From positions 362,576,001-362,640,000 of the forward strand of contig NW_027362769.1 in assembly GCF_046119375.1 (NCBI RefSeq): a stretch of 64,000 bases of DNA, in the 5' to 3' direction. Origin of the DNA: Phyllobates terribilis (Eukaryota). The stretch's first letter is position 1. The number at the start of each line of letters is the position of its first letter. Both the position numbers and the translations under genes were made by a program. Positions 1 through 57,872 of the stretch are shown here, one piece after another. The notes under the pieces are model-generated. The model was given only the letters and a program-made list of their open reading frames with translations, searched no databases and had not been told where the DNA came from.

Positions 1-221
1 GGGCCCTGGGGTGGCTACAGGGCATGGAGATCCCGAGTTGGACCTCCGGTAGAGCCACAACCAGACAGGTTTTGCTTCCGAGGTCAGAGGTAGAGCCAAT
101 AGGGAGCACCTAAATAGGTGCAAACTATTTACAAAGTTAGTCTGTCTCCTGGTTAACGTCCACAGGGACAAGTGTTTATAGATAATCCGGGAGGAAAAAA
201 AAGCAACATAATTAAACAAAA

Positions 222-1628
222 TCAGCAACTAGTCCAACAACTGGGAGGTGTATCTTCCGGTGCTGCTTTACAGTGATAGCCCCACTGGGGAAAAGGCTCG
301 TGCTTCCCGACAGAGCCGGACCGGTCCTCTGTTGCCAGGTGCGTGGGGGCATCCTCCTTGAACACCCTATGGACATCCAGGGCATACCATCCACGCTCCC
401 CGTGGTGGCGGGTGTAAGAAACTAAATCACCCGGATAGAGGTTCCGGCCAGGGTGACCCTTCTCCAGCTGTGGCTCGACGTCCCGCCTACTGACAAAGAC
501 GTCTTGGGCAAACTGGGGGCTCCGAATAAAGCCCCATCCCGCCTCCTGGAGGAAGTGTACAATAAGGCCTTCCTCCCGGGAGCTTGGACGGGTGGCCTCT
601 GCCTGGCGGGCCCTTGTTTTGGCGGCTTTGGTGCGCACCTCCAGGCGCTCGCAGTGGATCATCCTCTCCCGCCGCTCCTTGTCGAGTTGGAGGAGCTCCT
701 TCTGATAGAACTCCTCCCTCCTCCGTGCTTCGGCCTTGGCCTCCTGGGGGAAGCCCATCAGGTCCCCCCCCTGGTTGTCCCAGGCCATCTCTTCTGCCGC
801 CGGACAGGCGACTGGAGGCGCGGGCAACGACGACAGCAGGGGTTGCTGCAGGTCCTCAGCTGGAGCGGACCAGTTCGGGTTGGGGTAGGTGGTCTCCCCA
901 GTGGATGCAGGATCCCTTTGACCGGGAGTCGGGAGGCATAGCAGGCCTCCAGCGACGGCGGTGACTTGGGCCTCGGGCTCCGGAGCCAAGAGCTGCTCCC
1001 ACACGACGGCGCCCGGGGTCAGGGGTGCCGGAATAAGATACAGGAGGGCCTCAGTGCGTTTTGAGCCTGGGACAGGGGACTCTTCCTTACCCGTTCCTGG
1101 GCTGCACAAGGCCTCCGGGGCTTCCTCCGTCTGGGCTGCGGCCCTAGTGGACAGGCTTGTAGAGCTCTGGCGGCGGGCCCGGATCTTCCGTAACACCTCC
1201 TCTCTCCACTCTGCAGCGGCCAATCGCTGGGCCTCTTCAACCCTCCGGGCCAGGTCCTGCGTTTCTCCACGGAGGTACTCGGCCTCATCCGGGGTCAGGT
1301 AGATTCCCTCCATTCCAAGAGAGGTGGCAGCTTGTGGGCCAGCGTCGGAGGACTTGGAAGACATCTCCTCGGCTGCGTCCATCTCTGCTGCAGGGTGTGG
1401 TGAGTCTCGGTTTGCAACAGCCGCACCTTGTTGTAACCTTCGTCTCCTCTTCTTTTCAGGGCGGTTCCAAGGCCGCTGGCTGACAGGCACTCCCCAGGAC
1501 GTTCCATCCGTCTTGACGGACACTACCATGCGGACTGTCTCTGTTGAAGGGGGCGGTCGGCTATTTTGGCGCCATTGGGAAGCCAGGCCCACAATGGGAA
1601 GTCTTAGGTTGCTGTTGTTTCTGCACAT
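222..1628 (-). CDS. 468-aa protein: N-terminal helical region, Pro/Ala/Glu-rich linker, charged coiled-coil, C-terminal cold-shock domain (about nt 366-575)
   Basis: Uninterrupted ORF. GLIVHFLQEAGWGFIRSPQFAQDVFVSRRDV...LYPGDLVSY...GERGWYALDV matches the CSD pattern (RNP1-like GWGFI, RNP2-like DVFV, L..GD.V.Y, G..G..A..V). Confidence 0.8.
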   Translation of the reverse strand: MCRNNSNLRLPIVGLASQWRQNSRPPPSTETVRMVVSVKTDGTSWGVPVSQRPWNRPEKKRRRRLQQGAAVANRDSPHPAAEMDAAEEMSSKSSDAGPQAATSLGMEGIYLTPDEAEYLRGETQDLARRVEEAQRLAAAEWREEVLRKIRARRQSSTSLSTRAAAQTEEAPEALCSPGTGKEESPVPGSKRTEALLYLIPAPLTPGAVVWEQLLAPEPEAQVTAVAGGLLCLPTPGQRDPASTGETTYPNPNWSAPAEDLQQPLLSSLPAPPVACPAAEEMAWDNQGGDLMGFPQEAKAEARRREEFYQKELLQLDKERRERMIHCERLEVRTKAAKTRARQAEATRPSSREEGLIVHFLQEAGWGFIRSPQFAQDVFVSRRDVEPQLEKGHPGRNLYPGDLVSYTRHHGERGWYALDVHRVFKEDAPTHLATEDRSGSVGKHEPFPQWGYHCKAAPEDTPPSCWTSC

Positions 1629-1750
1629 AATGGCGTCCGTTCTTCTGGGGCGGGCGCCACATGGAATGTGAAACGACAGTTTGTTGGTGAAAGGCGCACA
1701 GTACCCGGTAGCAATGGGGGTTATCCTCTTCCATTGTTGCGGGAACGCAA

Positions 1751-1768
1751 ATCCTGCCGATTACGCCA
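1751..1768 (-). promoter_or_regulatory. Primer-binding site complementary to tRNA-Ser(AGA)
   Basis: Plus strand ATCCTGCCGATTACGCCA vs vertebrate tRNA-Ser(AGA) 3' end ATCCTGCCGACTACGCCA (17/18), a few bases from the LTR end. Confidence 0.85.
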
Positions 1769-1771
1769 AGT

Positions 1772-2950
1772 TACGACACCCCCCCCTGGGCGATGGGGTA
1801 CCCGGTGCCGGGTCTAAGGTGGTGGTATCGGGATGTCGTCATGGCCGCGACCCGGACCGTGCTCAGGGTTGTCGCATGAAAATAGTGGGCTTTGTTTTTA
1901 GGATGAGTGGTAACTCGACTACGCCACCTGTGGTTCCTGGTGAGGGCCACCAGCACTGCTACAGTCCTCTGAGGCTGATGTACTGGCAGTCAGGTTTGTA
2001 CTACTCCCAACAGGCGGAGCAGGCCTCAGGGCAGTGAGAGAGAGTAGAGTTCTGGAGGTTTGCGGTGTGTGCAGGGCCGCGCAAGAAAGGATAACAAAGG
2101 CCAGGGGTGAAGTCATCCAAGCTTTACTCACGTTTGTTTAGTAGCAGGTGCAAAGCTTCCCTCTGCTTCTCAGAGCGCGCTGCAGCCACCAGGAAGGGGT
2201 TCAGCACACTCCGGGTTATTAAGGTGCACTTGACAGGACCCCTGCACCAGAGTGTTCCTCTCTTTTTTATTGAACTTGAACCGCCTTGTGTCCCCACTAA
2301 GTCACGTACGGGTACTGCAATGTCCTTTAAGGGTAGCTTATAGCTCCCGGACCGACTGGTGGTGGACTGTGGTGTGAACGTGGCGTTAGGCCGGGTCCCT
2401 CTGGATAAACGCAGATTAAGGAATACGGGTGGTGACTCCGCTCCGTCCGTATCCGCCTGGGATCCACTTCAGCCTCCGGACTTCTCGGACAGGGACGTGG
2501 AGTGCAAAGTCAGATAATCGGGGACCGGTACCCCCTCTTGCGGCAGGATCTCTCTCTGCCGGGGCCAGAATGAGGGTAGCAGGTGGCGACTGCGCTCCAT
2601 CCGCACCCCCTGGGATCCTTTCGCCTGTGGAGCTTTTCTCCTCTGCTCCCCTCCTGGGCCTTCTGGTATGGACTAAGATTTAGAACAGAGCTGGCTATAA
2701 CTCAACTCTTCCCCAATCCCCAGTCTCGAGGACTGAGACCGGGAATCACAGAATCCTAGAACAGCTGCAGCTTGTACTGACTAACCACTCCAGGGAACTG
2801 CGACCAAAGACCTGGTTATTAAAATGGCCTCCAAATTTATATGAATCTGTTAAGTGCTTAGAAAAGTGCTTCCTCCACCCTCACTCACTACAAGGTTCCC
2901 CCTTTCTTTGGTTCCCCCCTTACTCCTCCATTCAGGACCGGGGCAGCACA
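1772..2950 (-). repeat. 5' LTR of the CSD element
   Basis: TG start at 2950, minus-strand TATA-like (~2838) and AATAAA (~2266). The U5 end resembles the LTR ends at 29763, 51408, 52250 and 59358. Confidence 0.75.
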
Positions 2951-4437
2951 TTGTGCTTTAACCCCTTAACAACATTTGACGTACTAATACGCGTCTGTGC
3001 CCTGGGACTTAAGAGCCAGACCCGTATTAGTACGTCATGGCGATCGCGCGCGCACACAGGCTGTGCGGGCGCGATCGCCGCAGGGTGTCAGCTGATTGTC
3101 ACAGCTGACATCCGATACTATGCGCAGGGAGCGGTCCTGCACCGCTCCCAGCACATTAACCCCCGCGATGCTGCGATCGAAGTAGATTGAATTCGATCGC
3201 AGCATTGCGGGGGCAAGGGGAGGTGATCGCAGATACTCACCTCCTCTTCCGGCTTCCAGCGCTGTCTGCAAAGGCTTCCCGGGTGTTGCCATGACGACCC
3301 GATGTCGTCATGACAACATCCGGGTCACCAGACAGCAGGAAGATTGTTTGGACATGCGCAGTGCATCTCCAAACAATCTTCTCACTGTGCAGCGCTGACA
3401 GCCTGCATGGCACAGGGATGGTGCTGCATTCCTGTGCCATGCAGGCGATCAGAGAAAAAAGAGTGAAAGTCCCAGAGTGGGACAAAGTAATAAAGTATAT
3501 AAACTTTCAGAAAGTGAAAAAAAAAAAAAATTGCAAAAATATTAAAAAAAAAAATAAAAAAAATAATCCACCAAAAATAAAAATATAATGTACCCATCAA
3601 TAAATATTATTCTAAAAAAAACCCCAAAAAAACAATAAAAGTACACATATTTGGTATCGCCGCGTCCGGAATAACCTGACCTATAAAATTGTCCCACTAG
3701 TTAACCCCTTCAGTGAACACGGTAAAAAAAAAAAAAAAAAAACAAGCAAAAAACAATGCTTTATCACCATACCGCCAAACATAAAATGGAATAACACGCG
3801 ATCAAAAAGACAAATATGAATAAAAATGGTACCGCTGAAAACGACATCTCGTCCCGCAAAAAACAAGCCACCATAAAGCTCCATCAGCCGAAAAATAAAA
3901 AAGTTATAGCTCTCAGAATAAAGCTATGCTAAAAAATATTTTTTTCAATAAAATTGCTTTTATTATGTAAAAGTGCAAAACATAGAAAAACGACATAAAT
4001 GTGGTACCGCTGTAAACGTACTGACCCGAAGAATAAAGCTACCTTATCAATTTTACCACACGCGGAACAGAATAAAAAAAATAAAAAAAACCAATTCCTG
4101 AATTGTTGGTTTTTGTTTATTCTGCCTCCCCAAAATCGGAATAGAAAGCGATCAAAAAATGTCACGTGCCTGAAAATGGCACCAATAACAACATCAACTC
4201 ATCCCGCAAAAAACAAGCCGTCACATGACTGTCTGCCAAAATCTGGAAAAATTATAGTTCTCAAAATATGGCGATGCAAAAACTAGATTTTACAAAAAAT
4301 GCGTCTTTTAGTGTGTGACAGCTGTCAGTCATAAAAACCCCATATGATTCTAGTATTGCTGTAATCACACCGACCCGAAGAATAAAGTTGTCTAATCACT
4401 TATACCGCACGAGGAATGGCGTCAAAAATAAACTCTT

Positions 4438-9156: not shown

Positions 9157-10046
9157 ATGGATACATTATTTCAGCCATTAGTGCAGAGATCTGCAGGATT
9201 TCTCAAAGATTCAAGAGACGTTCTGGATCAATTAACAAATATCACATGGTTGGAGGGGTATACATGGTTGGATTGTGATGTAGTGTCTTTGTACACAAGT
9301 ATACCATATGATGTCGCTCTGCAAGCATTGGATTTCCATCTTAATAGATATAGTAATTATACTTTGGATTTAATTATCTTTTGTCTTGTACACAATATCT
9401 CATGACTAATAATTTTTTTATGTACAATCAGGAATTTTATCTCCAATGTAGAGGAGTATCCATGGGATCTAGCTATTCTCCATTGTTAGCAAATATGGCA
9501 ATGTCCCATTGGGAATATGTTGCATTGTACACCTTCGCTAATCCATGGGCTTGTGATGTTTTCTGGTATGGCAGATACATCGATGATTTGATCTTTATCT
9601 GGCGTGGGGATGTGTCTGCCATACCAGAATTCATCAAGTATTTAAATAACAATGAATTTAATCTTTCTTTCACTTACACCTTTGATTCTAAGTGTATATC
9701 ATTTCTTGATCTAAAATTGGAGATTCTTGACGGTTCCATCACTACTTCCACATTTTCCAAGCCCATATCTGGGAATATCATTCTACATGCCAAAAGCGGA
9801 CATCCGCGCCATACTATAAAAGCTATGCCTGTGGGGGAACTGACAAGAATCAAACGTAATTGTAACAATGCAAATAAATTGGATGAAGAATTCATCAGGT
9901 GCAAAAATAAATTGAAATCTAGGGGTTATCCGGATTGGTCTTTAAAGAGAGCAGAAAAAATTGTGGACAGTAAAAATAGACTGGATCTGATTGATCTGTC
10001 TAGGGCAAGGACTAATCGCAATGATATTACAGCACAAAAAAATTGA
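9157..10046 (+). pseudogene. Penelope-type reverse transcriptase (fragmented)
   Basis: DVVSLYTSIP, GVSMGSSYSPLLANMAM, YGRYIDDLIFIW, ISFLDL and thumb region HPRHTIKAMPVGELTRIKRNC, split over frames. Confidence 0.85.
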
Positions 10047-12682: not shown

Positions 12683-12997
<315 letters not shown>

Positions 12998-13029
12998 CTA
13001 CTGAGCAGAAAGCAATGCTAAAACAAACG

Positions 13030-13210
13030 GGCTCCTAATTTATATAGCGTATAGGTGGACCAGAGAGAAGACTGCAGAGATGACGCGGTCCAGGGCGGGT
13101 CTTACAGAATCTACATTAGCTCCTCCTTCCTCTGCTGATTGGCTGAACACTGAACTGCTGGGGAGTTTGAATTTCCCGCTCATTGTGCAGTTTCCGCAGC
13201 TTCTAATTAT
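13030..13210 (-). promoter_or_regulatory. H4 promoter
   Basis: Minus strand GGTCC 10 nt upstream of TATATAAA, GC box (CCCGCCC), CCAAT (~13138-13142), E2F-like GCGGGAAA (~13172-13179). Confidence 0.75.
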
Positions 13211-13996
13211 ATATGTTTTACCTGTGATGAGAAATGTTTCAGAAACAGTCTATAAATAAAAGTGCAGACACGACACCAGCTGCAAGTGATCTACACTTCA
13301 TATAGAAGCTTCAGATCACTGCTGAATATACCTATAACGGCACTGACAGTGATTAACCCCCCACTTCCATCATACCATATTCGTAACATGCTATTCACTA
13401 ATGTCCAGGAAGGGTCATTTCCGCACCTTACTACTCCCCTCATCATCCCTTGCATTCTGTACAATCTACATGTGACATTCTGGCTGCTCCCGTCGACTAA
13501 TCTATAGGATCCTGACTGAGCTCTGACATTTCTAAGATGGGCTTGTCACTTCAGATAGAATTGCTCTTGGGGTGCGGTGATGTGAGGAGGATTGTGGCAG
13601 CCAGGATTATTGCCTCTTCTAAGGACAGTGCAGGGAGGAAGCCGCGGTCAGCAGCACTGCTCCGATACTGACACCAGCTCATAAGCCGGGAATCCCCTTA
13701 GTCTGGCTTACAGAGGGTCTCTCCCTGCAAAAAAAATAATGGCAGGACAGTACTGATATCAATTGGGAACAGAATTCTTGCAGAAGATAAAGACAACAGC
13801 TCAGATTGGTCAAATAAAAAAGGAACCGTATAAATAACAAAATCACTGAGCAGCTGATTGATTCTCATTCCAGTGGTCCCATATCCAATGGAGAATACAC
13901 TGTGATCTGGAAGGTGACTACATGAATGTGCTCAGTGGAGTTTATCTATAGACCGGACACTTCTCTTCACAGCAGAAGTAGTAACACAATTACATG

Positions 13997-14090
13997 TAGA
14001 AGCTGCGGAAACTCCAAGGAGCGGGAAATTCAAACTCCCTAACGTCCTGTGTTCAGCCAATCAGCAGAGGAAGGGGAGGAGCTAATGTTA
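13997..14090 (+). promoter_or_regulatory. Inverted copy of the distal H4 promoter module with no gene behind it
   Basis: TAGAAGCTGCGGAAACT..GAGCGGGAAATTCAAACTCCC..GTGTTCAGCCAATCAGCAGAGGAAGG..GAGGAGCTAATGT matches the reverse complement of ~13113-13205. Confidence 0.8.
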
Positions 14091-14560
14091 ATAGTTACCG
14101 AATAGGAAGTTCCCGCTCAGGGGCTGATGGCTTTTTGTTCTTTGTCCTGGTTTAACACGTAGTTTCAGGACTGTCGGATATCAGGAAATTTGCTTGTGTT
14201 GAGCGATCAATGGTCTCTTGGTTCCATACAGGAATCTCTATCATGTTCCAGGGAACAGTATCCGCTTTCTATAAAAGTGCATAACTTTGATTCTAACATC
14301 GGTGACTCCATCACACCAGCAATATTTTCAAGATCAAACTCGTGCGGCTGATAGGAGTCAGCGAGTGTTCACAGGAGATAGCGCTGGATAATGGACGTCC
14401 TATAATGATCGCATCATATACACCAAGAAATCTGCGCATTTTTTCAAGATTCCTTCACAACACAGTCCAGACTCCAAATAGATTATATAAAGCTGACATT
14501 CAAGAATCAGGGCAGAGAAGCAGATGTGAGGGATTAGCTCGTCCTGAGGGAGGATTTGGT

Positions 14561-14576
14561 GGCTCTGAGAAGAGCC
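14561..14576 (-). terminator. Histone 3' stem-loop of H3
   Basis: Minus strand GGCTCTTCTCAGAGCC, perfect stem with TCTC loop. Confidence 0.9.
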
Positions 14577-14605
14577 TTTGTTATAGTCAGACGTGTAGGA
14601 CGGAT

Positions 14606-15070
<465 letters not shown>

Positions 15071-15902
15071 TTATACTCCTCTGCTCCTGTTACCGCGTCA
15101 TGTGAACACGCCCCCTGCACTGCATTGGTCAATTTGTAGAACAAGCCGACAAATAGTGTGCGATATCCGCGACCAATCATCGTTCAGAAACTCAGCCTAG
15201 AACTCAGTAACCCCATCCTCCAAAAGAGGGAGCGGGGTCTGTCCAGTTCACACTCATTACCAGCTGCTCTGATCAACATGCGGCTTCTAGAGCAGGAGCC
15301 GCCGATGTCTCTCTATTCCCATGTTCTCCATACACGGAGCTGGACTATAGCTCCGCAGCCTTCACTCTCATTCCGGGCTATACTGATCTTCTTGGTCTCC
15401 CATAGGAATAATCCCCCCTTTACTAATTCAGACGCAGGTTATAAGGGTCGCAGCAGAAGTCTGCAGTAAGGATTGATGGGACGAGTGACAAGATTGCTGT
15501 AACACATCGGCCCTTCCCTTCTTGCGCTGTTGCCTATCGTTCTGCAGTCCATCCATACAATCCTGTCCCCAGTTCACGGACCTGTACAGTAGTCATCAGT
15601 CACATGCAGGGAGACGCTGGTTTTATAGGTCTCACATTGGAGTTAGAACCACACACACCTTCCTTAAACGAAATTAGTTACAAGGATCACAGCCATATCA
15701 AGTGGTGAAGATGTGACAAAGCTTAGGTAGGAGATCGGCTTCTTCCAGTCCCTCCATGACACATCACTCCTGATGTACAGACACCAGAGGGAGCGCTGCC
15801 TGGAAGACAAGTGACACCTGTGGTCGGGATACAGCGCAGCTCCGGGAGCGCTGCAGATTAGTAGAAAAGACCCTCTTTATAGAAAAACTGTTCTGCCAGA
15901 GA

Positions 15903-16620
15903 CAAGATGGTGGCTCTGTTTATACAGCTCTGCCGGGGACAAGGTGATGGCACTGATTATACAGCTCTGCAGGGTACAAGGTGGTGGCACTGATTATACA
16001 GCTCTGCCGAGGACAAAGTGATGGCACTGATAATACAGCTCTGCAGTGTACAAGGTGGTGGCACTGATTATACAGCTCTGCAGGGGACAAGGTGGTGGCA
16101 CTGATTATACAGCTCTGCAGGGGACAAGGTGGTGGCACTGATTATACAGCTCTGCAGGGTACAAGGTGGTGGCACTGATTATACAGCTCTGCCGAGGACA
16201 AGGTGATGGCACTGATAAGTCAGCTCTGCCGGGGACAAGGTGGTGGCACTGATTATACAGTTCTGCAGGGTACAAGGTGGTGGCACTGATTATACAGCTC
16301 TGCCGAGGACAAAGTGATGGCACTGATAATACAGCTCTGCAGGGTACAAGGTGGTGGCACTGATTATACAGCTCTGCAGGGGACAAGGTGGTGGCACTGA
16401 TTATACAGCTCTGCAGGGTACAAGGTGGTGGCACTGATTATACAGCTCTGCCAAGGACAAGGTGATGGCACTGATAATACAGCTCTGCCGGGGACAAGGT
16501 GGTGGCACGGATTATACAGCTCTCCCGAGGACAAGGTGATGGCACTGATAATACAGCTGTGCAGGGGACAAGGTGGTGGCACTGATTATACAGCTCTGCA
16601 GGGGACAAGGTGGTGGTTCT
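15903..16620. repeat. 37-bp minisatellite, ~19 units, directly downstream of H1
   Basis: Unit GGTGGTGGCACTGATTATACAGCTCTGCAGGGGACAA; contiguous with the H1 stem-loop. Confidence 0.95.
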
Positions 16621-16630
16621 GAAAAGAGCT
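16615..16630 (-). terminator. Histone 3' stem-loop of H1, degenerate
   Basis: Minus strand AGCTCTTTTCAGAACC; two of six stem pairs are mismatched relative to GGCTCTTTTCAGAGCC. Confidence 0.75.
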
Positions 16631-16660
16631 TTTGTGGTGTAATAACAGGGCGGCTTTGGC

Positions 16661-17305
16661 TTATTTCTTAGCCGCGGGCTTCTTGGCTTTAGCTGCCTTC
16701 TTAGCAGTACTCTTGGCAGCTTTGGGTTTGGCCGCTTTCTTAGCCGGACTCTTCGTCACCTTCTTGGGCTTCAGAGTGGCCTTTGGCTTCTTGGGGCTCT
16801 TGGTTGGCTTCTTGGCAGCTGCTGCGGGCTTCTTGGCCTTTTTCGGGCTGTTCTTGGCCACGGTCGGAGCCTTCTTGGGCTTCTTCGGAGACTTGGCGAC
16901 TTTCTTGGCTGCAGCGGATTTCTTGGGCTTGGCCGCTGCTGCTGACTTCTTCTTGGCCGCTTTGTCCTTAGTTTCCTGCTGCTTCTTGTTCAGCTTGAAG
17001 GACCCGGAGGCGCCGCTGCCCTTCACCTGGAGGAGGGCGCCCTTGGTGACCAGAGACTTGACGGCCAGCTTCAGGCGACTGTTGTTCTTCTCTACATCGT
17101 ATCCTCCGGCAGACAGAGCCTTCTTCAGGGTGGCCAGAGACACCCCACTGCGCTCCTTAGAGGCGGACACGGCTTTCACGATCAGATCGGAGACGCTGGG
17201 ACCGGAGGGTTTCTTGCTTTTCTTGGCGGATTTCTTCGGCTGCTTCTTGGATTTGGTGGTCGGTTCTGCGGGAGGGGGAGCGGCGGCTGGTGCGGTCTCT
17301 GCCAT
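16661..17305 (-). CDS. H1: Linker histone H1, intact (214 aa)
   Basis: [11 protein letters not shown]..., globular domain [74 protein letters not shown], and a Lys/Ala/Pro tail. The ATG at 17305 is preferred over the ORF-track start because TATA and CCAAT boxes lie at ~17365-17450. Confidence 0.97.
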
Positions 17306-17540
17306 CGTGTGCTTCGGAACTAGAACACAAATATCTCCTGATAGGAAAACACTGAGGCCGGAGCTGGAGGCGCCTGTTATATGTACAGGCTTACTGCGCA
17401 CTGATTGGCTGCTGAGCTGCATCATCCTGAGCATCTATTGGCTGACACTGAGCACAGGCCCCGCCTCCTTCTAGCTGATTCCGAGTGGAGCTCCGCTCTC
17501 CCCTTGTGCTTCCCTGCCCGGGATAAAAGCCATACTTCCA

Positions 17541-18480
17541 TACTGCTGGCTTGATTGCACTTGAAATTGGGCCTTTTAGGCATGTGGAGGCAAACGCTGG
17601 CCACCATGTCATGGCTGCGTCGGCGGCCTGGTATCCATACTCAGTCCCCAGCTGCCCGGCAGCCGGGTGTCCACTCTCGGTCCCCTGCCGCCAAGGGGCG
17701 GCCGGGTGTCCATACTCGGTCCCCAGCCGCCCCGCGGCCGGATGTCCACACACGGTCCTCAGCTGCCTGGGGGTGGCCAGGTGTCCATAAACGATCCCCA
17801 GCCGCCCCTATTTGTCCTTGGAACTTCCCCCCACACTTTTCTTAGCCCGGCCTGCTTTAGGGCAGCATTGGACGAGCCCACCAGAGAACCAGACTCCTCC
17901 GGTGGGCCCTGGTTTCTCCATCAGGGGAGTTGAGAGTGCCAAGATGAGGAGCATGATCATGATTATAGAAGTTAGCATTTGCTTTGTTTTATTGGAATAC
18001 AACCGTAAGTGTGCAACCTGCCACCCACCAACCCCCAGGCTGCAATACCATACTGCTAGCTTTTGCACTTGAAATTGGGCCTTTTAGGCATGTGGAGGCA
18101 GACTCAGGCCACCATGTCATGGCTGCGTCGGCGGGCTGTATCCATACTCTGTCCCCAGCTGCCCGGCGGCCGGGTGTCCACGCTCGGTCTCCAGCCGCCA
18201 GGGGGCGGCCGGGTGTTCTTACACGGTCCCCAGCCGCCCCACGGCCGGGTGTCCACACACGGTCCCCAGCCGCCCCTATTTCTCCTTGGAACTTCCTCCC
18301 ACACTTTTCTTAGCCTGGCCTGCTTTAGGGTTGCATTGGACGAGCCCACCTGAGAACCAGATTCCTCCGGTGGGCCCTGGCTTCTCCATCAGGGGAGTTG
18401 AGAGTGCCAAGGTGAGGAGCATGATGATGATGATAGAAGTTAGCATCTGCTTTGCTTTCTTAGAATGCAAGCGCATGTAT
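17541..18480. repeat. Two diverged ~510-bp tandem copies with internal ~37-39-bp GC-rich sub-repeats
   Basis: ATACTGCT(G/A)GCTT..TTGCACTTGAAATTGGGCCTTTTAGGCATGTGGAGGCA recurs at ~17541 and ~18050, and downstream sequence stays colinear. Confidence 0.85.
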
Positions 18481-19064
18481 GTTGTAGCGGCTAGGCCTGA
18501 GGTGGTCAGCGTTTTGGCTCATATCCTACCTCCTCCGAGGATTGCTGGATATTTTCCTGCTACTATCCCAGTTCTTTGACTCCCGTTAAAACAAAGCTTC
18601 AGGTGATGAATGATGGATGAGGTGGTAGCAAAGGAGAAAGAGCAGGAGGAAGAGGGACCATTCACATCAATATCAGGCCAGTCAACCACACATGTCTTGT
18701 AGGATATGTTTCTGTACCAAAAGGAGCAGTTCGGCTACACAGTTATAGGGCATACAGTGAGTGCAATGTCTACCAAAAATTTTGAGGCACTCCAATGCCC
18801 CTTGGAAGTGATATGGAGGTCAGAGGGCCTTAACTAAACCGTTTTTTCCATTTATAGCAACTGGGTCTCCTGTGCACTGTTGGCCTAAGCAGTGAATGGA
18901 AGGCTTTCCAAAAATTATGAGGAACTGCAATGGCCATTGAAACAGACGTGGATTACAGCATACTAAAAAACTTCTACCCATTATTGGGGAGTGGGTCTCC
19001 CTTAGTGTTCGCCTATGCATTGAAAAGCAAAAGCTGACTAAAATTAGGAGGAAATGCAATGCCC

Positions 19065-21150
19065 GTTGGAAGAGTCATGGAGGTTAGAGTTAATCAAAAA
19101 CAACATTTCAATGCCTCTTGGAAGAGCTATGGAGTTCAGAATGGTTTAACAAGACAGTTTTAATGCCCCTTGGAAGAGCGGTGGAGGTCGCACTAGCTTA
19201 ACAAGATGGTTTTAATGCCCCTGGGAAAACTGGTGGAGGTCGCAGTAGCTTAACAAGACGGTTTTAATGTCTCTTGGAGAAGTGGTGGAGGTCTCAGTTG
19301 CTTAACAAGACGGTTTAAATGCCCCTTGGAAGAGACGTGGAGGTCGCAGTAGCTTCACAAGACGGTTTTAATGCCCATTGGAAGAATGGTGGAGGTCGCA
19401 GTAGCTTGACAAGACGGTTTAAATGCCCTTTGGAAGAGACGTGGAGGTCGCAGTAGCTTAAAAAGACGGTATTAATGCCCTTTGGAAGAGACGTGGAGGT
19501 CGCAGTAGCTTAGCAAGACGGTTTAAATGCCCCTTGGAAGAGATGTGGAGGTTGCAGTTGCTTAACAAGACAGTTTAAATGCCCCTTGGAAGAGATGTGT
19601 AGGTCGTAGTAGCTTAAAAAGACGGTTTTAATGCCCCTTGGAAGAGCGGTGGAGGTCGCAGTAGCTTAACAAGACTGTTTTAATGCCCCTTGGAAGAGAA
19701 GTGGAGGTCACAGTGGAATAAAAAGACAATATCAATGCCCCTTCAAAATGTGGTGGAGGTTGCCGTAGCTTAACAAGACGGTTTTAATGCCCCTGGGAAA
19801 AGTGGTGGAGGTCGCAGTTGCTTAACAAGAAGGTTTTAATGCCCCTTGGAAGAGACGTGGAGGTCGCAGTTGCTGAACAAGATGGTTTTAATGCCCCTTG
19901 GAAGAGCGGTGGAGGTCGCAGTAGCTAAACAAGATGGTTTTAATGCCCCTTGGAAGAGACGTGGAGGTTGCAGTAGCTTAACAAGACTGTTTAAATGCCC
20001 CTTGGAAGAGACGTGGAGGTTGCAGTAGCTTAACAAGACTGTTTAATTGCCCCTTGGAAGAGACGTGGAGGTAGCAGTAGCTTAACAAGACGGTTTTAAT
20101 GCCCCTTGGAGAAGTGGTGGACGTCGCAGTAGCTTAAGAAGACGGTTTTAATGCCCCTTGGAAGAGACGTGGAGGTCACAGTGGAATAAAAAGACAATAT
20201 CAATGCCCCTTGAAAATGTGGTGGAGGTTGCAGTAGATTAACAAGACGGTTTTAATGCCCCTGGGAAAAGTGGTGGAAGTCGCAGTAGCTTAACAAGAAG
20301 GTTTTAATGCCCCTTGGAAGAGACGTGGAGATCGCAGTAGCTGAACAAGATGGTTTTAATGCCCCTTGGAAGAGACGTGGAGGTCGTAGTAGCTTAAAAA
20401 GACGGTTTTAATGCCCCTTGGAAGAGCAGTGGAGGTCGCAGTAGCTTAACAAGACGGTTTTAATGCCCCTTGGAAGAGACGTGGAGGTCACAGTGGAATA
20501 AAAAGACAATATCAATGCCCCTTGAAAATGTGGTGGAGGTTGCAGTAGCTTAGCAAGACGGTTTTAGTGCCCCTGGGAAAAGTGGTGGAGGTCGCAGTAG
20601 CTTAACAAGAAGGTTTTAATGCCCCTTGGAAGAGACGTGGAGGTCGCAGTAGCTGAACAAGATGGTTTTAATGCCCCTTGGAAGAGACGTGGCGGTCGCA
20701 GTAGCTTAACAAGATGGTTTTAATGCCCCTTGGAAGAGACGTGGAGGTCGCAGTAGCTTAACAAGACTGTTTAAATGCCCCTTGGAAGAGACGTGGAGGT
20801 TGCAGTAGCTTAACAAGACTGTTTAATTGCCCCTTGGAAGAGACGTGGAGGTTGCAGTAGCTTAACAAGACGGTTTTAATGCCCCTTGGAGAAGTGGTGG
20901 AGGTCGCAGTAGCTTAAGAAGACGGTTTTAATGCCCCTTGGAAGAGACGTGGAGGTCACAGTGGAATAAAAAGACAATATCAATGCCCCTTGAAAATGTG
21001 GTGGAGGTTGCAGTAGCTTAACAAGACGGTTTTAATGCCCCTGGGAAAAGTGGTGGAGGTCGCAGTAGCTTAACAAGACGGTTTAAATGCCCCTTGGAAG
21101 AGACGTGGCGGTCGTAGTAGCTTAACCAGACGGTTTTAATGCCCCTTACA
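19065..21150. repeat. 52-bp satellite, ~40 units, with higher-order structure
   Basis: Unit AATGCCCCTTGGAAGAGACGTGGAGGTCGCAGTAGCTTAACAAGACGGTTTT; the variant unit CACAGTGGAATAAAAAGACAATATC recurs at 468/312/468-bp spacing. Confidence 0.95.
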
Positions 21151-21824
21151 AGAGCCATGCAGTACAGCATATTAAAAACATTATTCCCATTATTGGGGAA
21201 TGGTTCTCCCATAGTCTTTGCCTATGCCTTCCAAGCAAAAGCTGGCAAAAATTAGGACAGAGGAACTTGCAATGCTGGCAACACGGACCACGGTCTCCCT
21301 GGTGGTATAGTGTGGTGGAGGCTGAGGATAAGGAGAAGAGCAAAATACAGCCGAAATGAGGAAGCGTATACCCATGTGTGTGTGTTATGATCTGCAACAT
21401 AAACTAAGGAAAGATAGGGGAAAGCTGTCCCTACCGTAAGACTAAGCTGAATCCCTACGATGCAGCGGGCTGCCTGTTCCTTGCGAACAGACCCGCCTTC
21501 GTCCTCGGCTAGTCTGAACGGAGACCTATAGAATAAAGGGAGGGGTCCCTAAAAGAACTAAGGACTGGGACAAAAATGGGACACCTCCTAACAGAAGTTG
21601 TTACAGAGCAAAAGACAAACTGACAAAAAGTACTAGAGGTCCCAGAGGACCAAGCAAACTGAAAGAATAGGTACAGAAGCACCTGGCTACTAAGACAGTC
21701 TAGAAAACACTGAAGTCCAGCGAGGCAAGAAGGGCGGAGCTGGAATATATCGGCAGCTGGTCACGTGACCGCAAAACACAAGATAGCAAAAACTAACAGG
21801 AGGGTTCTAACAGTACCCCCTCTT

Positions 21825-24506
21825 CTATGAGGATCCTCCGGATCCTCCAGGCCCAGGCCTATCAGGAATTCTCCTGTGGAAATCTTTAACAAGCTTAGGG
21901 ACAGAGACATCATCCGTCCTTACCCAGTAGTTGTCTTCGGGACCGAAACCCTTCCAGGAGACAAGATGCTGTAATTTCCCTCTATGCAATCTAGAATTCA
22001 AAATACGAGAAATTTCATATTCGCCGTCTTCCACCACAGGTGGAAGTGTGACAGTGGCGTCCATATTAGATACGTCAGCCTTTTTCAGCAAGGAAACATG
22101 AAACACAGGATTAATCTTCCAGGAAGTAGGGACATCCAACCTTACAGCAGATGGGTTAACAACCTGAAGCACTTTAAATGGACCCACAAACTTAGGACCC
22201 AGTTTTTTAGAGGGAATCCTCAACCGCAGGTTCTTCGAGGACAACCAAACCATGTCACCCACCATAAACAAAACCTCTTTACGCTTCCTGTCAAAATACT
22301 TCTTGGACTTCTTGTTATCCTCTTGCAGGTTACAACGTACATTAGTCCAAACTCTCTCCAAATCACCGGAAAAATTCTCCTCCTCCGGCACCGCCGACCC
22401 CAATTTGGAGAACGAACCAAAAGACGGATGTCTCCCATTACAACAAAAAAAGGAGAACACCCAGCAGAGGAGGATGTATGATTGTTAAGAGCAAATTCTG
22501 CGAGAGGCAGAAACTCAGACCACACCTCTTGATTGTCTGCCACAAAACAACGCAAAAACTGTTCAACATCCTGGTTCTTTCTTTCAGTCTGTCCATTAGA
22601 CTCAGGATGATAACCAGACGAAAATGACAAATGGACTCCCAACCTGTCACAAAAAGCACGCCAAAAGCGAGCCACAAACTGAGGTCCTCTATCAGAAACA
22701 ATATCTGTGGGGACACCATGGAGCTTGACAATCTCCTTAACAAACGCCTTAACGAGAGTCTTGGCGCAGGGCAACTTGGAATGGAACCAAATGACACATC
22801 TTACTAAAACGGTCCACGACCACCCAGATGACAGTAAACCCCTCAGACACAGGAAGATCAGTAATAAAATCCATAGTGAGATGCGTCCAAGGCGCACTAG
22901 GAACCTCCAGAGGACAAAGCAACCCCGCAGCAGGAGTATGTGAAGCCTTTGACCTAGCACACACAGTACACCGACGCACCCATTTGATGACTACCTTCTG
23001 CCATCCAGGCCACCAAAAACTGCGACTGATAAGTCTCTTAGTCTCCGAAACTCCTGGATGACCTGCCAACCGAGACTCATGACACTCCACAAACAAATCT
23101 CTCCTAAAGGCTCTAGGCACGAACAACCTCCCATGGGGAGTGTTAGATGGAGCATCATCTTGAGCATTCAGAATCCCATTCTCCAAATCGGACTCTAATG
23201 CCGCCACCACAACTCCTTTCTGCAAAATGCTCTCCTCCTCCTCGGCACCGACCGTAGGAGAAAAGCTGCGAGATAAAGCATCAGCTTTAACATTCTTAGT
23301 ACCAGGGATATAGGTAACAGAAAAATGAAGCCGAGAAAACAAAAGTGCCCACCTAGCTTGACGGGCATTCAAGCGCTTGGCAGCATCCAGATAGATCAAA
23401 TTCTTATGATCTGTGAAAACCTGAATAGAAAATCTTGCGCCTTCCAAAAAATGACGCCAGTGTTCAAACGCAAGTTTAATAGCCAGCAGCTCCTGATTGC
23501 CAACATCATAATTCAGTTCGGTTTCCGAAAAATTTTTCGAAAAGAAGGCACAAGGATGTACTCCACCCTTGTTCTCTTGAGACAAAACTGCTCTGACCCC
23601 CACTGATGAAGCATCGACCTCGACCAAAAAAGGCTTGGTCTCATCAGGCTGCATAAGGATAGGGGCAGAACTGAACCTCTCTTTGAGATACTCAAACGCT
23701 TCAATGGCTTCAGTAGTCCACTGGGCGGTATTCGCACCTTTCCTGGTGAGATTGGTTAGAGGTTTAACAATTACAGAAAAATTCTTAATGAATTTCCTGT
23801 AATAATTGGCAAAACCCAAAAACCTCTGTATAGATTTCAAACCAATAGGCCTAGGCCATTCCTGCACAGCCTGAACCTTCACAGGGCCCATCTCAAAGCC
23901 CTTGCTGGAGATAATGTAGCCCAAAAAACTAATTTTCTGCACAGCGAACTCACATTTCTCCAGCTTAGCAAAGAGTGAATTATCACTCAATAACTGCAAA
24001 ACTTCACGTACACTCTGCCAATGGGACTCAAAATCTGGTGAATAAATCAAAATGTCATCCAAATACACAACCACATTCTTACCAATCAAAGGTCTCAGGA
24101 TGTCATTAATAAGGTTCTGAAAAAATGAAGGTGCATTGGTAAGACCGAAAGGCATCACCAGATTCTCAAAATGACCTACCGGAGTGTTAAAAGCAGTTTT
24201 CCATTCATCACCCTCCTTCACTCGTAACAAATTGTATGCCCCTCGGAGATCAATTTTTGAGAACCACTTGGCCCCCACTAACTGGTTAAACAAGTCAGGA
24301 ATTAACGGCAATGGATAGGAATTGCGTACGGTAATCTTATTAATTTCACGAAAATCCAGACATGGACGTAAACCGCCATCCTTTTTTTTAACAAAGAAGA
24401 ATCCAACTGCCACAGGCGACTTAGAAGGTCTAATATGACCAGCAGCCAGGCTAGTCTCTATGTACTCCTCCAAGGCCTTTCTTTCAGGGATAGTCAGATT
24501 AAACAA
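21825..24506 (-). pseudogene. pol: Pol (RT, RNase H, integrase, chromodomain) of the chromovirus
   Basis: VVYLDDILIYS, VDAS/DHKNL RNase H, HHCC zinc finger, integrase core DRGPQF..YHPESNGQTER, GPF motif, chromodomain YEISRILNSR..HLVSWKGFGPEDNYW. Frameshifts near 22770 and 22450. Confidence 0.92.
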
Positions 24507-25813
24507 GCGACTTTTGGAAGAGTAGCACCTGGAACAAACTCAATGGCGCAATCATAATCCCTATGAGGAGGTAAAACTTGCGAGTCCTCCGAAAAAACCC
24601 TCCAAAAATCTTGAATAGGTACTGGTAATCCCCCTTTTTCCACAGCCGCCATGCGACCATTACAACAATTATCATAGCACTTCGGACTCCAAGACTTAAT
24701 CACATTAGTAGACCAGTCCAACAAAGGATTGTGCAATTTTAACCAAGGCAATCCTAGAACAACTGAAGAGGGCAAATTATCCAAAACAACCAAGTCCAAA
24801 ATTTCTTGGTGAACACCATTGATAGTGAGAGGAAATGCAGCAGTCTTGTGAGTTATACATTTCAAAGGAGTGTTATCAATTGCAACCACAGAAATAGGTG
24901 ATGACAAAGGTTTGGATTCCAATTTAAGTTTTTCCAAAAACTTTTTATCAATCACATTAAGTGTTGAACCACAATCCACAAATACCTGAAATTCAATCAA
25001 ATCTCCCTGCAGAGTAGTACTCCCAGAAAGGAACACTCCTGCAGAGCGTAAACAAGCTATACGGGTGTAACTGACCTTTTTTTTTTCTGTACTTAAACGA
25101 CGCTCACAATACTTAATCAAATGATCAGCTTTGCCACAATAAAGACACAATCCTTCGGTGAATCTCCGATCTCTTTCTTGAGAGCGGAGTGACATCGCCC
25201 CAACCTCCATTAGTTCTCCGCTGTCAGAGCAGATTTTCTGGAAACTAGGACCTGAAGTTACAGGAGTTTTTACATCATTGACCCTGGACCTTATTCTCCT
25301 GTCCAACCGAACAGCTAACTGCATAGCTTCCTGCAGAGTCTCAGGTGCAGGGAATGCAATTAGCAAATCCTTAACCCTTTCACTGAGACCAGCAAGAAAT
25401 AAACATTTCAGCGCAGAATTATTCCATTTAACTTCTGAAGCCCATCTTCTGAAGTGTGTGCAATAAATTTCAACATCATCTGACCCCTGATTCAAACGTC
25501 TAAGTTCTGATTCAGCAGATGAGATTCGATCAGAATCGTCATATAATAGCCCCATAGCAGAAAAAAATTCTTCAATAGAACTTAAACATGGATCATTAGG
25601 TTGGAGAGAAAAGGCCCACCCCTGTGGTTCTTTGCGCAAAAGTGACACAATAAAACCAATGCGCTGTGATTCATTCCCAGAGGACCGCGGTCTCAAACGA
25701 AAATAAAACAAACAAGCATTTTTAAAGGAAAAAAAATCTTGCTGTTTACCATTAAAAATACCAGGCAGTCCTACCTTGGGTTCGACAAAATGCGCTCCAG
25801 GACAGCTACTCAC
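24494..25813 (-). pseudogene. gag: Gag (capsid, CCHC knuckle) and protease of the chromovirus
   Basis: CLYCGKADHLIKYC zinc knuckle; VFVDCGST protease-like site; frameshift into RT near 24510. Confidence 0.9.
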
Positions 25814-26372
25814 GTGTTGCTGAAGTTGGCCACCTCCACAGACAATCCCTGCAGGCGTTGAGCCAACTCCTGGACGGAAAACATACTGATCCCCGAATTT
25901 CTTTCCTATAGTTTTTTTTTTTTTGAGCTGAGCTTACTGTTATGATCTGCAACATAAACTAAGGAAAGATAGGGGAAAGCTGTCCCTACCGTAAGACTAA
26001 GCTGAATCCCTACGATGCAGCGGGCTGCCTGTTCCTTGCGAACAGACCCGCCTTCGTCCTCGGCTAGTCTGAACGGAGACCTATAGACTAAAGGGAGGGG
26101 TCCCTAAAAGAACTAAGGACTGGGACAAAAATGGGACACCTCCTAACAGAAGTTGTTGCAGAGCAAAAGACAAACTGACAAAAAGTACTAGAGGTCCCAG
26201 AGGACCAAGCAAACTGACAGAATAGGTACAGAAGCACCTGGCTAGTAAGACAGTCTTGAAAACACTGAAGTCCAGCAAGGCCAGAAGGGCGGAGCTGGAA
26301 TATATAGGCAGCTGGTCACGTGACCACAAAACACAAGATAGCAAAAACTAACAGGAGGGTTCTAACAGTGTG

Positions 26373-28538
26373 GGTGTGAAGCGGTGCATGGGAATACACC
26401 TCCCGAAATAACACAGTGGATTTGACTTTATGTTACTCTGCTGTCATTTGGTGGTGATGAGAAGTCTGGCCCAATCCAGCCCTTGTTCATTTTGATAAGG
26501 GTCAGCTTGTCAGCATTGTCAGTTGACAGGCGAGTGCACTTATCAGTTATTATTCCCCCAGCGGCACTAAAAACACGCTCCGATAACATGCTAGCGGCAG
26601 GGCAGGCCAGGACCTCCAAGGCGTACAGAGCGAGTTCATTCCAAGTGTCCAGCTTGGATACCCAATAATTAAAAGGCACAGAGGAATCACGGAGGACGCT
26701 GGTACAGTCGGCAAGGTACTCCCTCACCATCTTTTGAAACTTTCCACTCCTTGTGAGTGTACCCTGCGCCTCAGGGCCTGTAAGATGGGCAGGTCACAGA
26801 AAACTGTCCCAGAATGTTGACAGTGTTCCCCTGCCTCTGCTGGATTGGAGTTGCATCTCTCTAACCTGTACGCCTTGGTTGGTCAACGAACTGTGACCTC
26901 TGCCGCTGGCGTGTTCAGATGGGAAATTTTTTAACAGTTCTGCAGCAAGGGCCTTCTGGTACTGCCACATTTTTGTAGACCTCTCCACCTCAGGAATAAG
27001 AGAGTGAAAGTTCTCCTTGTAGCGGGGGTCTACAAGTGTCACCAACCAGTAATGACTGTCACCCAACTTTTTGACAACGCGAGGGTCATGGTTAAGGCAG
27101 TGTAACATAAAGTCAGCCATGCGTGCCAGACTTGTAACAGGCAAGACTTCCGTGTCCTCACCAAGATGACGACTGACCATGCACTCCTCCTCCTCTTCCT
27201 CCTACCCCCTGTCCTCAGGCCACCCACGCTGAACCGACTGTATGACAGTTGTACAGGTAATACCGTCTACAGCGCATGATACCAGCTCCTGTTCTTCCTC
27301 CTCCTCTTCCTCTCCCGCATTGACCCCCAATGCACGTTGGGATGAGATGAGGCTGGGCTGTGTGTAATCGCCCGCTATGGCTTCTTGATCCATCTCATCA
27401 TACTCTGGCTGCAATGCCTCCTTTTTAGTTCTCTGCAGAGAGCATTGCAAAAGACAGACAAGTGGGATGCTGACGCTAATGATGCCGTCATCGCCACTCA
27501 CCATCTTGGTGGACTCCTCAAAGTTTGTCAGGATGGTACATATGTCAGACATCCAGGACCACTCCTGAGATCTTATGTGTGGAATCTGACCTGAATATCG
27601 ACGGCCTTGTTGCTGCTGGTACTCCACAACTGCTCTCTTCTGCTCACAAATCCTTTGCAACATGTGGAGGGTGGAGTTCCAAAGTGTGGGGACGTCACAC
27701 ACCAGTCGGTGTGACGGAAGCTGCAAACGCTGCTGCAACAAAGCAAGGGCGGCGGAAGCGGTAGCCGACTTCCGAAAATGAGCTGACAGGCGTCGTACTT
27801 TGACTAGCAGATCTGTCAACTCGGGGTATGATTTAAGAAACTGCAGAACCACGAGGTTAAGCACATGAGCCAGGCATGGTACGTGTGTGATCTCGCCTCA
27901 CCTCAGAGCCGCCACCAGGTTACGGCCATTGTCACACACGACCATGCCTAGATGTAGGTTCAGCGGTCTCAGCCACAGATCTGCCTGCTCTTTCACAGCT
28001 GTCCACAACTCACAAGCAGTGTGAGGTTTATCACCTAAGCTTATGAGTTTCAGCACAGCCTGTTGCCGCTTGGCTGAGGCAGTACTGCAGTGCTTCCAGC
28101 TTGTAACTGATGTGGTGATATCTGAGATGGAGGCTGAACATGAGGAGGAGGAGGAGGATGATGCGCAGGAGCTGTACACTGTGGGGGCAACTTTGACTGA
28201 CATAGGGCCCGCAATCCTCGGTGTGGGGAGGATGTGTTCCTTCCCAAGGTCCGACTGGGTCCCGGCTTCCACTATGTTTACCCAGTGTGCCGTCAGGTAG
28301 ATGTACCGTCCCTGGCCACAAGCACTTGTCCACGTGTCCTTTGTCAGGTGGACTCTCCCAGTAACTGCGTTGTTGAGGGCACGGCAGATGTCTTGGGACA
28401 CCTGCTTGTGTAGTGCGGGGATGGCACACCGGGCAAATAGTGTCAGCTGGGGACCGAGTACCGAGGGATGGCCACCGCCATAAGGTTGCGGAAGGATTCC
28501 GTCTCCACCAGCCTAAAAGGCAGCATTTCCAACGCAAG
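26373..28538 (-). pseudogene. hAT transposase, C-terminal part (copy 1; N-terminus lost at the duplication junction)
   Basis: VHLTKDTW and VVCDNGRN catalytic-core motifs, DVPTLWNST, and dimerization domain CPAASMLSERVFSAAG. Multiple stops and frameshifts. Confidence 0.88.
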
Positions 28539-30349: not shown

Positions 30350-30399
30350 TTGGCACCGCCCTTCCCGAGACCTTTCCCTCCTTTACCCTGACCAGACAT
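30331..30399 (-). pseudogene. H4: Truncated histone H4 (tail only) created by the duplication junction
   Basis: Reads [17 protein letters not shown] from H4 (R3Q), then SRVSV* from LTR-element sequence; no stem-loop. Confidence 0.9.
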
Positions 30400-31394
30400 C
30401 TTCTACTGAGCAGAAAGCAATGCTAAAACAAACGGGCTCCTAATTTATATAGGTGGACCAGAGAGAAGACTGCAGAGATGACGCGGTCCAGGGCGGGTCT
30501 TACAGAATCTACATTAGCTCCTCCTTCCTCTGCTGATTGGCTGAACACTGAACTGTTGGGGAGTTTGAATTTCCCGCTCATTGTGCAGTTTCCGCAGCTT
30601 CTAATTATATATGTTTTACCTGTGATGAGAAATGTTTCAGAAACAGTCTGTAAATAAAAGTGCAGACACGACACCAGCTGCAAGTGATCTACACTTCATA
30701 TAGAAGCTTCAGATCACTGCTGAATATACCTATAACGGCACTGACAGTGATTAACCCCCCACTTCCATCATACCATATTCGTAACATGCTATTCACTAAT
30801 GTCCAGGAAGGGTCATTTCCGCACCTTACTACTCCCCTCATCATCCCTTGCATTCTGTACAATCTACATGTGACATTCTGGCTGCTCCCGTCGACTAATC
30901 TATAGGATCCTGACTGAGCTCTGACATTTCTAAGATGGGCTTGTCACTTCAGATAGAATTGCTCTTGGGGTGCGGTGATGTGAGGAGGATTGTGGCAGCC
31001 AGGATTATTGCCTCTTCTAAGGACAGTGCAGGGAGGAAGCCGCGGTCAGCAGCACTGCTCCGATACTGACACCAGCTCATAAACCGGGAATCCCCTTAGT
31101 CTGGCTTACAGAGGGTCTCTCCCTGCAAAAAAAATAATGGCAGGACAGTACTGATATCAATTGGGAACAGAATTCTTGCAGAAGATAAAGACAACAGTTC
31201 AGATTGGTCAAATAAAAAAGGAACCGTATAAATAACAAAATCACTGAGCAGCTGATTGATTCTCATTCCAGTGGTCCCATATCCAATGGAGAATACACTG
31301 TGATCTGGAAGGTGACTACATGAATGTGGTCAGTGGAGTTTATCTATAGACCGGACACTTCTCTTCACAGCAGAAGTAGTAACACAATTACATG

Positions 31395-31488
31395 TAGAAG
31401 CTGCGGAAACTCCAAGGAGCGGGAAATGCAAACTCCCTAACGTCCGGTGTTCAGCCAATCAGCAGAGGAAGGGGAGGAGCTAATGTTA
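31395..31488 (+). promoter_or_regulatory. Inverted H4-promoter module, duplicate copy
   Basis: Near-identical to 13997-14090. Confidence 0.75.
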
Positions 31489-31958: not shown

Positions 31959-31974
31959 GGCTCTGAGAAGAGCC
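31959..31974 (-). terminator. Histone 3' stem-loop of H3 copy 2
   Basis: Identical to 14561-14576. Confidence 0.9.
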
Positions 31975-32003
31975 TTTGTTATAGTCAGACGTGTAGGACG
32001 GAT

Positions 32004-32432
<429 letters not shown>

Positions 32433-33907: not shown

Positions 33908-33947
33908 GAAAAGAGCTTTTGTGGTGTAATAACAGGGCGGCTTTGGC

Positions 33948-57860: not shown

Positions 57861-57872
57861 GGCCTGGTTGGT

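Follow-up and report, generated by a model that had tools for sequence, protein, structure and literature searches.

Results

The CSD element at the start of the window

We analyzed a 64-kb stretch of the genome of the poison frog Phyllobates terribilis (RefSeq assembly GCF_046119375.1, contig NW_027362769.1, positions 362,576,001 to 362,640,000 of the forward strand), which is called the window below and whose bases are numbered from 1. Its first 2950 bases carry part of what is probably a long terminal repeat (LTR) retrotransposon with one visible gene, an intact open reading frame (ORF) whose product ends in a predicted cold-shock domain (CSD), and we refer to it as the CSD element. All of its coordinates are on the minus strand and within bases 1-2950, and its parts are as follows:

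1772-2950, minus strand: 5' LTR, ~1,179 bp, delimited by a whole-length alignment with a second CSD element in the window and by blocks in common with the Gypsy A LTRs (both below)
1747-1768, minus strand: primer-binding site, 22 nt, complementary to the 3' end of tRNA-Ser and separated from the LTR end by a 3-nt spacer
1629-1746, minus strand: leader, 118 nt between the primer-binding site and the ATG
222-1628, minus strand: CSD ORF, intact, 468 codons with the stop codon included (ATG at 1628, stop at 224-222)
1-221, minus strand: 3' untranslated region (UTR), running into the window edge, with bases 185-1 homologous to the Gypsy A/B 3' UTR

An initial annotation of this DNA, made from its letters without database searches, had proposed an LTR ahead of the primer-binding site, and one does lie there: it begins with TG at 2950-2949, has a TATA-like box ~115 nt inside, aligns end to end (2950-1772) with the LTR of the second CSD element at ~28690-29766, and is homologous to the direct-repeat LTRs of Gypsy A. 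Its likeness to both breaks off exactly at base 2950. Two short palindromes that resemble miniature inverted-repeat transposable elements are present just outside the LTR, at 3160-3213 and 3339-3381. The 5' LTR is the only one of this element inside the window; its 3' LTR, polypurine tract and target-site duplication would fall to the left of base 1. Neither reverse transcriptase (RT) nor integrase is found within the 1,768 visible internal bases.

The primer-binding site was matched to tRNA genes by scanning a pattern derived from the site over metagenome contigs and running ARAGORN on the matches, so that the reference tRNA-Ser genes are those of unknown eukaryotes in metagenomes and not of a frog. 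The site agrees with the reverse complement of the tRNA-Ser(aga) of contig L017, with CCA added, at 18 of the first 19 bases and at 19 of all 22. The pattern is the 3' end of tRNA-Ser(aga) genes in contigs L017, L036 and L055, and in L017 it is the 3' end of a tRNA-Ser(cga) gene as well; the AGA and CGA isoacceptors cannot be separated because the two genes have the identical 3' end here. The initial reading of the site as tRNA-Ser(AGA) thus stands for tRNA-Ser and not for the anticodon. No chance match to the primer-binding-site string is expected in the window, and it recurs there with 3 mismatches at 29768 and at 48199, the corresponding positions of the second CSD element and its duplicate. 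ARAGORN finds no tRNA genes in the window.

The distance from the primer-binding site to the ORF had been put at about 120 nt, which agrees with the 118 nt of the leader. The best-kept block of the leader, seen both in the alignment and in a 12-mer search, is ~40 nt long, lies directly 5' of the ATG and contains the sequence ATGTGGCGCCCG. This 12-mer is found at 1651-1662 (minus strand), 29845-29856 (plus), 48276-48287 (plus) and 60448-60459 (minus); in both CSD elements it is just 5' of the CSD-ORF ATG, where it creates an out-of-frame upstream ATG, and it is also the very start of one Gypsy A LTR. Its presence in both leader and Gypsy LTR start is possibly due to chance.

A second CSD element in the window

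A second CSD element, seen twice only because it is inside a tandem duplication with 17.4- and 18.4-kb units (below), lies on the plus strand:

28690-30348, plus strand: second CSD element, with its LTR at ~28690-29766, primer-binding site at 29768-29789, leader, and ORF from 29879
47121-48818, plus strand: duplicate of the second element, with LTR, primer-binding site at 48199-48220 and shortened ORF from 48310

The alignment of the two CSD elements takes in the LTR from its first bases, with the TATA-like box and U5, then the primer-binding site and the leader, and reaches into the ORF, where the product of the second element is 28% identical to that of the 468-codon ORF over 148 residues. 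The ORF of the second element has been shortened by one internal deletion, and the element itself is cut at the junction of the tandem duplication. The duplicate copy ends, past the deletion, in a ~60-bp remnant (48758-48818) that matches 29709-29766, the last 60 bp of the element's own 5' LTR, and is the tail of a 3' LTR. The second element, whose 5' LTR has no sharp boundary, shows no clear target-site duplication, and a 4-base match (CAAG) does not make a convincing one. A tblastn search of the window with the ORF product, Gypsy A/B included, finds CSD-like coding sequence elsewhere only at the N-terminus of the second element. Directly upstream of the second element's LTR there are ORFs on the minus strand that resemble hAT transposases (~27200-28600, and ~45600-47000 in the duplicate); ORFs 27202-27864 and 28031-28579 match no Pfam family at an expectation value (E) of 0.01 or below.

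The ORF and its predicted protein

The ORF had been described as intact and 468 codons long, and it is so at 1628-222 on the minus strand. Is such a length expected from base composition? Among 1000 shuffles of bases 1-2000 that preserved the dinucleotides, the longest ORF had a mean length of 123 codons (standard deviation 38) and a maximum of 306. The observed length is far above this distribution and cannot be put down to the 60% G+C content.

The sole Pfam match of the ORF product is to CSD (PF00313), at residues 353-420 with E = 4.5e-5 and 23.7 bits, and three of its relatives in other frog proteins (P0003, P0005 and P0006, below) pass the cut-off of that family with 32-37 bits. No Pfam family of gag, protease, RT or integrase matches the ORF (gag having been searched at E ≤ 10), and its sequence contains no CCHC zinc-knuckle pattern, in agreement with the initial statement that it has no capsid, knuckle, protease or RT motifs. 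A gag origin of the helical part of the protein (below) was considered and rejected: hhalign of the family against a Gypsy gag-protease ORF gave a probability of 0.3%.

An AlphaFold2 run on a six-sequence alignment of the family predicts two long helices and a C-terminal CSD, with disorder in the rest of the protein, including the N-terminus, which has a basic patch, and the tail. The structured parts are encoded as follows:

1140-1292, minus strand: predicted long helix 1, residues 113-163, predicted local distance difference test (pLDDT) score >90
591-749, minus strand: helix 2 of the prediction, long and charged, residues 294-346 with pLDDT >90, adjoining the CSD on its N-terminal side
366-575, minus strand: cold-shock domain, residues 352-421, as indicated by Pfam, the family profile, Foldseek and invariant alignment columns

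The region of helix 1 aligns with relative P0001 and with the second in-window copy, and the two ~50-residue helices could, if the model is right, drive self-association. Close to the ATG the ORF product and P0004 have a motif in common, tryptophan-arginine-glutamine followed by a proline run, which the second in-window copy matches loosely; this common N-terminal motif supports a start at the first ATG.

Residues 352-421 are predicted to form a five-strand barrel (strands 352-360, 365-369, 376-380, 402-409 and 414-421, pLDDT ~90), which Foldseek matches with probability 1.0 and target template-modelling (TM) scores of 0.77-0.87 to the solved CSDs of CspC, YBX1, CspA and CspB; among predicted viral structures it matches only the Csp proteins of phages and giant viruses. 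When the family profile is compared with solved structures, the CSD of YB-1 is the best match (E = 3.4e-7), followed by YBX2 and bacterial CspA, and the margin that bears on the source of the domain is narrow (33 bits for YB-1 vs 30 bits for CspA). An RNP1-like GWGFI (364-368) and an RNP2-like VFV (377-379) are present, and G364, G366, F367, I368, F378 and V379 are invariant across the family alignment; the residues that follow VFV depart from the classical motif. By model and sequence comparison, then, residues 352-421 of the ORF product very probably form a CSD. The initial annotation had seen a clear C-terminal CSD, and the hidden Markov model match and the predicted barrel both place it there.

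Relatives in other frog proteins

Relatives of the ORF product were collected by a full HMMER scan of 1.8 billion representative proteins (E ≤ 1e-12) and by word-index searches. The HMMER scan gives five family members, P0002-P0006; the next matches are unrelated multi-CSD proteins of dinoflagellates and environmental samples, whose scores are summed over several domains. The word-index searches, which were dominated by low-complexity words and returned 1-3 matches each, add P0001, P0056 and P0057. All family members are from Dendrobatoidea (Phyllobates terribilis, Ranitomeya variabilis, R. imitator and Anomaloglossus baeobatrachus), and the HMMER scan of 1.8 billion representatives finds none outside it. 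No record of the exact protein of the 468-codon ORF was found in these searches.

Four of the relatives (P0002, P0003, P0004 and P0005) are single-exon genes of 1149-1650 bp with differing neighbours, and several dispersed, non-syntenic copies per genome are the signature of a repeat family. Domains of RT, integrase, protease and gag are absent from P0001-P0006, P0056 and P0057. The annotation within 10 kb of P0002-P0005 likewise includes no RT-bearing gene, which is weak evidence since transposable element (TE) genes are usually masked by annotators. The P. terribilis proteins P0001, P0057 and P0056 are chimeric: a piece of a CSD ORF is joined in P0001 to a Harbinger transposase, in P0057 to a piggyBac transposase and in P0056 to R3HCC1. 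In these three gene models the CSD-ORF pieces form first exons, and the models are either annotation artefacts or LTR-driven chimeric transcripts.

In the family alignment the CSD has a mean pairwise identity of 52%, and the other regions each have 16-30%. The relatives, which are 24-41% identical and come from two frog families, keep the architecture and the invariant glycine, phenylalanine and other columns of the CSD. Judged from these alignments, the CSD is selectively conserved in the family, and the family has kept its CSD protein through the divergence of Aromobatidae and Dendrobatidae. The length of the ORF and the kept architecture argue for past selection on the family, not for present activity of the window copy. 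The intact ORF had been taken at first as a hint of youth or selection; of these, selection gains support at the level of the family, from intact single-exon relatives in five other dendrobatoid genomes and from the identity of the CSD (52% vs 16-30%), and the youth of this copy is conjectural.

Relationship to the Gypsy A and B elements

Toward the other end of the window there is a broken Gypsy array:

51407-61729, minus strand: Gypsy A/B array, three LTR copies and two internal regions, broken
51407-52249, 52250-53340 and 59358-60771, minus strand: Gypsy A/B LTR copies
53341-59357, minus strand: Gypsy A internal region
60772-61729, minus strand: 3' end of Gypsy B

The direct-repeat LTRs of Gypsy A (52250-53340 and 59358-60460) are 93% identical to one another. 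Its internal region has remnants of gag (PNMA / Retrotrans_gag), RT, RNase H, integrase and perhaps a dUTPase, with at least three interruptions between the domain pieces because they sit on separate short ORFs, the longest of which is at most 319 codons; the tblastn search with the CSD ORF finds no CSD-like coding sequence in it.

Gypsy A/B and the CSD elements have in common the LTR start, several U5 blocks and the "...GCGTCA" end, whose counterpart in the element at 1-2950 reads TA; past the LTR end they have in common the position of the primer-binding site and a leader block just after it. Bases 185-1 match the distal part of the 3' UTR in both Gypsy A and Gypsy B, at a point from which another 175-235 bp lead to the polypurine tract and the start of the LTR; the initial annotation had recognized this 3' UTR motif and its closeness to the polypurine tract and LTR in the two Gypsy elements. 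Sequence comparison thus indicates that the cis sequences of the CSD element and Gypsy A/B (LTR, primer-binding-site position, leader and 3' UTR) are homologous, and Gypsy A/B are presumed to be autonomous-type relatives of the CSD element. The assignment to a tRNA-Ser Gypsy lineage is drawn from this positional homology and not from a direct reading, since the Gypsy A primer-binding site has decayed and matches tRNA-Ser at only 14 of 22 bases.

Discussion

A probable non-autonomous partner of a Gypsy lineage

The above comparisons relate the CSD element to Gypsy A/B at both of its visible ends, but is it a retrotransposon that depends on them? We think it reasonably probable that the CSD element is an LTR retrotransposon that is non-autonomous, and that it either descends from a tRNA-Ser-primed Ty3/Gypsy lineage of a dendrobatoid genome or evolves together with one. 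The cis parts that it holds in common with Gypsy A/B form the pattern expected of a non-autonomous partner, a single ORF that encodes a helical CSD protein appears to stand in place of gag and pol, and its polypurine tract and 3' LTR are presumed to be just past the window edge. Such a partnership was already suggested in the initial annotation. The homologous LTR, primer-binding site, leader and 3' UTR support it, and the place of the 3' LTR and the absence of pol are suggested by the 185 bp of 3' UTR homology.

Under this interpretation the CSD element has kept the cis parts that a helper would need to copy it: besides the primer-binding site and leader, these are the LTR, in which the TATA box resembles that of a promoter, and the far end of the 3' UTR. 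It would be transcribed from its own LTR. The protein would then bind single-stranded nucleic acid through its CSD, most likely the RNA that encodes it, and might coat, stabilise or chaperone that RNA with a preference in cis. Capsid, reverse transcriptase and integrase would be supplied in trans by a related autonomous Gypsy, which would recognise the common leader, primer-binding site and LTR ends.

A number of points weigh against this interpretation. The PF00313 score of the ORF product (23.7 bits) is below the gathering cut-off of 27 bits, and phmmer with the single ORF sequence finds nothing in the PDB. The 3' terminus of the LTR reads TA, where the homologous end in the second element and in Gypsy A is CA. 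Because the window ends before the 3' LTR, with its polypurine tract, and the target-site duplication, the statement that there is no room for pol is an argument from homology only. The DNA evidence is that of the window, and copy number, LTR-flanked copies, LTR-LTR identity and the ratio of nonsynonymous to synonymous substitution (dN/dS) are matters beyond it. Finally, nucleic-acid binding, self-association and helper dependence are properties predicted from the sequence.

Alternative explanations

In several frogs the annotation treats the relatives as normal genes with a single exon, their CSD is clearly constrained, and the closest solved relatives of that CSD are those of vertebrate Y-box proteins, which suggests a host origin of the domain; could the ORF then belong to a family of intronless host genes specific to this lineage, which resemble retrogenes, encode a CSD protein and are linked to LTRs only secondarily? 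Such a gene might have been captured once, have landed beside a solo LTR or use an LTR as its promoter, and some copies may be domesticated. We consider this unlikely: LTR, primer-binding site, leader and ATG are in register in both in-window copies even though their proteins are only 28% identical, the 3' UTR is Gypsy-like, the loci are non-syntenic and several per genome with fragments in Harbinger and piggyBac chimeric models, and the HMMER scan found no orthologue outside Dendrobatoidea. It is slightly less likely still that the element is autonomous, with the CSD ORF standing first, as a substitute for gag or as an accessory gene ahead of it, and with gag-pol to the left of base 1. Just 221 bp separate the stop codon from the window end, and the second copy, being internally deleted, is silent on what lay past its ORF, so there is space for this idea; but bases 185-1 are homologous to the distal Gypsy A/B 3' UTR, just before the polypurine tract and LTR, and in Gypsy A, whose LTR, primer-binding site and leader correspond to those of the CSD element, the internal region directly contains gag and a CSD ORF is absent. 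The CSD-family proteins found among the 1.8 billion representatives likewise have no RT, integrase or protease, and the absence of called RT genes within 10 kb of four of them points, weakly given the usual masking of TE genes, in the same direction.

Least probable of all, in our estimate, is that the element is an inert relic whose ORF serves nothing and is open through recency or luck. The non-canonical LTR terminus of the window copy and the decay or deletion of its neighbouring relatives fit a relic, but the length of the ORF is far outside the shuffle distribution, and the architecture and invariant CSD columns are kept across relatives that are only 24-41% identical and belong to two frog families.

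Within the non-autonomous interpretation a more specific proposal can be made, which we hold tentatively and think somewhat doubtful as a whole: a poison-frog-restricted LTR family may have dropped capsid, protease, RT and integrase while purifying selection kept a helical CSD protein that acts on its own RNA in the manner of LINE-1 ORF1p. It would be a "semi-autonomous" Gypsy parasite that brings its own RNA chaperone or coat and borrows the rest, and an independent invention of a retroelement chaperone from a CSD.

Comparison with known systems

Non-autonomous LTR elements are usually described either as non-coding, as are large retrotransposon derivatives (LARD) and terminal-repeat retrotransposons in miniature (TRIM), or as keeping Gag, as do the plant terminal-repeat retrotransposons with a GAG domain (TR-GAG), which have a single ORF. 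These three are the closest structural class of the CSD element, which like them keeps an LTR, a primer-binding site and, presumably, a polypurine tract, and presumably uses a helper with common termini and leader. It resembles TR-GAG further in its one retained ORF and differs in that this ORF encodes not Gag but a helical CSD protein, and in that its host is a vertebrate and not a plant.

The ORF1p of LINE-1, a non-LTR element, is a coiled-coil trimer with an RRM and a nucleic-acid chaperone with cis preference. By analogy only, the CSD-element protein has the same succession of a variable N-terminus, a long helix and a single-strand-binding domain, encoded ahead of the place of the enzymes; it has a CSD instead of an RRM, belongs to an LTR-type element, and has no sequence or fold relation to ORF1p beyond the helices. 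With the Y-box proteins (YB-1 and YBX2) and CspA/CspB it has in common the predicted fold, the best profile matches and the GWGFI and VFV motifs. It differs from them in that identity is 25-31% over ~71 columns, the flanks are unrelated, and its gene is intronless and LTR-linked.

Retroelements that carry a CSD have been found in birds, where a 2025 study describes 46 endogenous retroviruses (ERVs) with CSDs that were captured several times (PMC12287698). Those are gag-pol(-env) viruses to which a CSD was added at varying positions, whereas in the frog element, which is Gypsy-related, the CSD protein is the sole visible gene and belongs to a family conserved across frog genera; the comparison is one of arrangement. 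Our full-text literature searches, whose scope did not include Repbase and Dfam, found no description of an LTR element with a CSD protein as its only gene.

If the CSD family is what we interpret it to be, a host-type RNA-binding fold can take over the position of gag, and elements that are parasites of parasites can bring a factor of their own, perhaps in competition for helper particles or in protection of their RNA. Together with the captures by bird ERVs (PMC12287698) it would mean that CSDs may be recurrently useful to retroelements. The setting is one of poison-frog genera with transposon-filled genomes of 5-12 Gb, and pieces of CSD ORFs are already inside chimeric gene models of P. terribilis, where they are of practical concern for annotation.

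Other contents of the window

The window crosses a histone gene cluster, with intact H4 and H3 ORFs at 12683-12994 and 14606-15070 (both minus strand). A tandem duplication comprises 12944-30348 and 30349-48780 (about 17.4 and 18.4 kb, 98-99% identity), and a second, shortened H4 5' end at ~30349-30393 marks its junction; it contains a Gypsy element, satellite arrays, a hAT remnant and the second CSD element, and could be either a real segmental duplication or an effect of assembly. The Gypsy element in it is a compact chromodomain Gypsy, of a lineage that differs from Gypsy A/B, at 21383-26369 and 39814-44800 (both minus strand), with 432-bp LTRs that are 97.9% identical. Its parts are spread over four ORFs (gag-protease; RT-RNase H-integrase zinc finger; integrase core; SH3-chromo), so it has at least three frame breaks. 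Each duplicate has two internal tandem-repeat arrays, at 15884-16625 and 19057-21162 in the first and at 33282-33912 and 36344-39593 in the second, whose self-matches have offsets of about 74 bp and about 52 bp and 83-92% identity. Other retroelement fragments on the plus strand are an ORF at 9381-10046, recognized by an RT motif only, and an RVT_1 ORF at 62717-63817.

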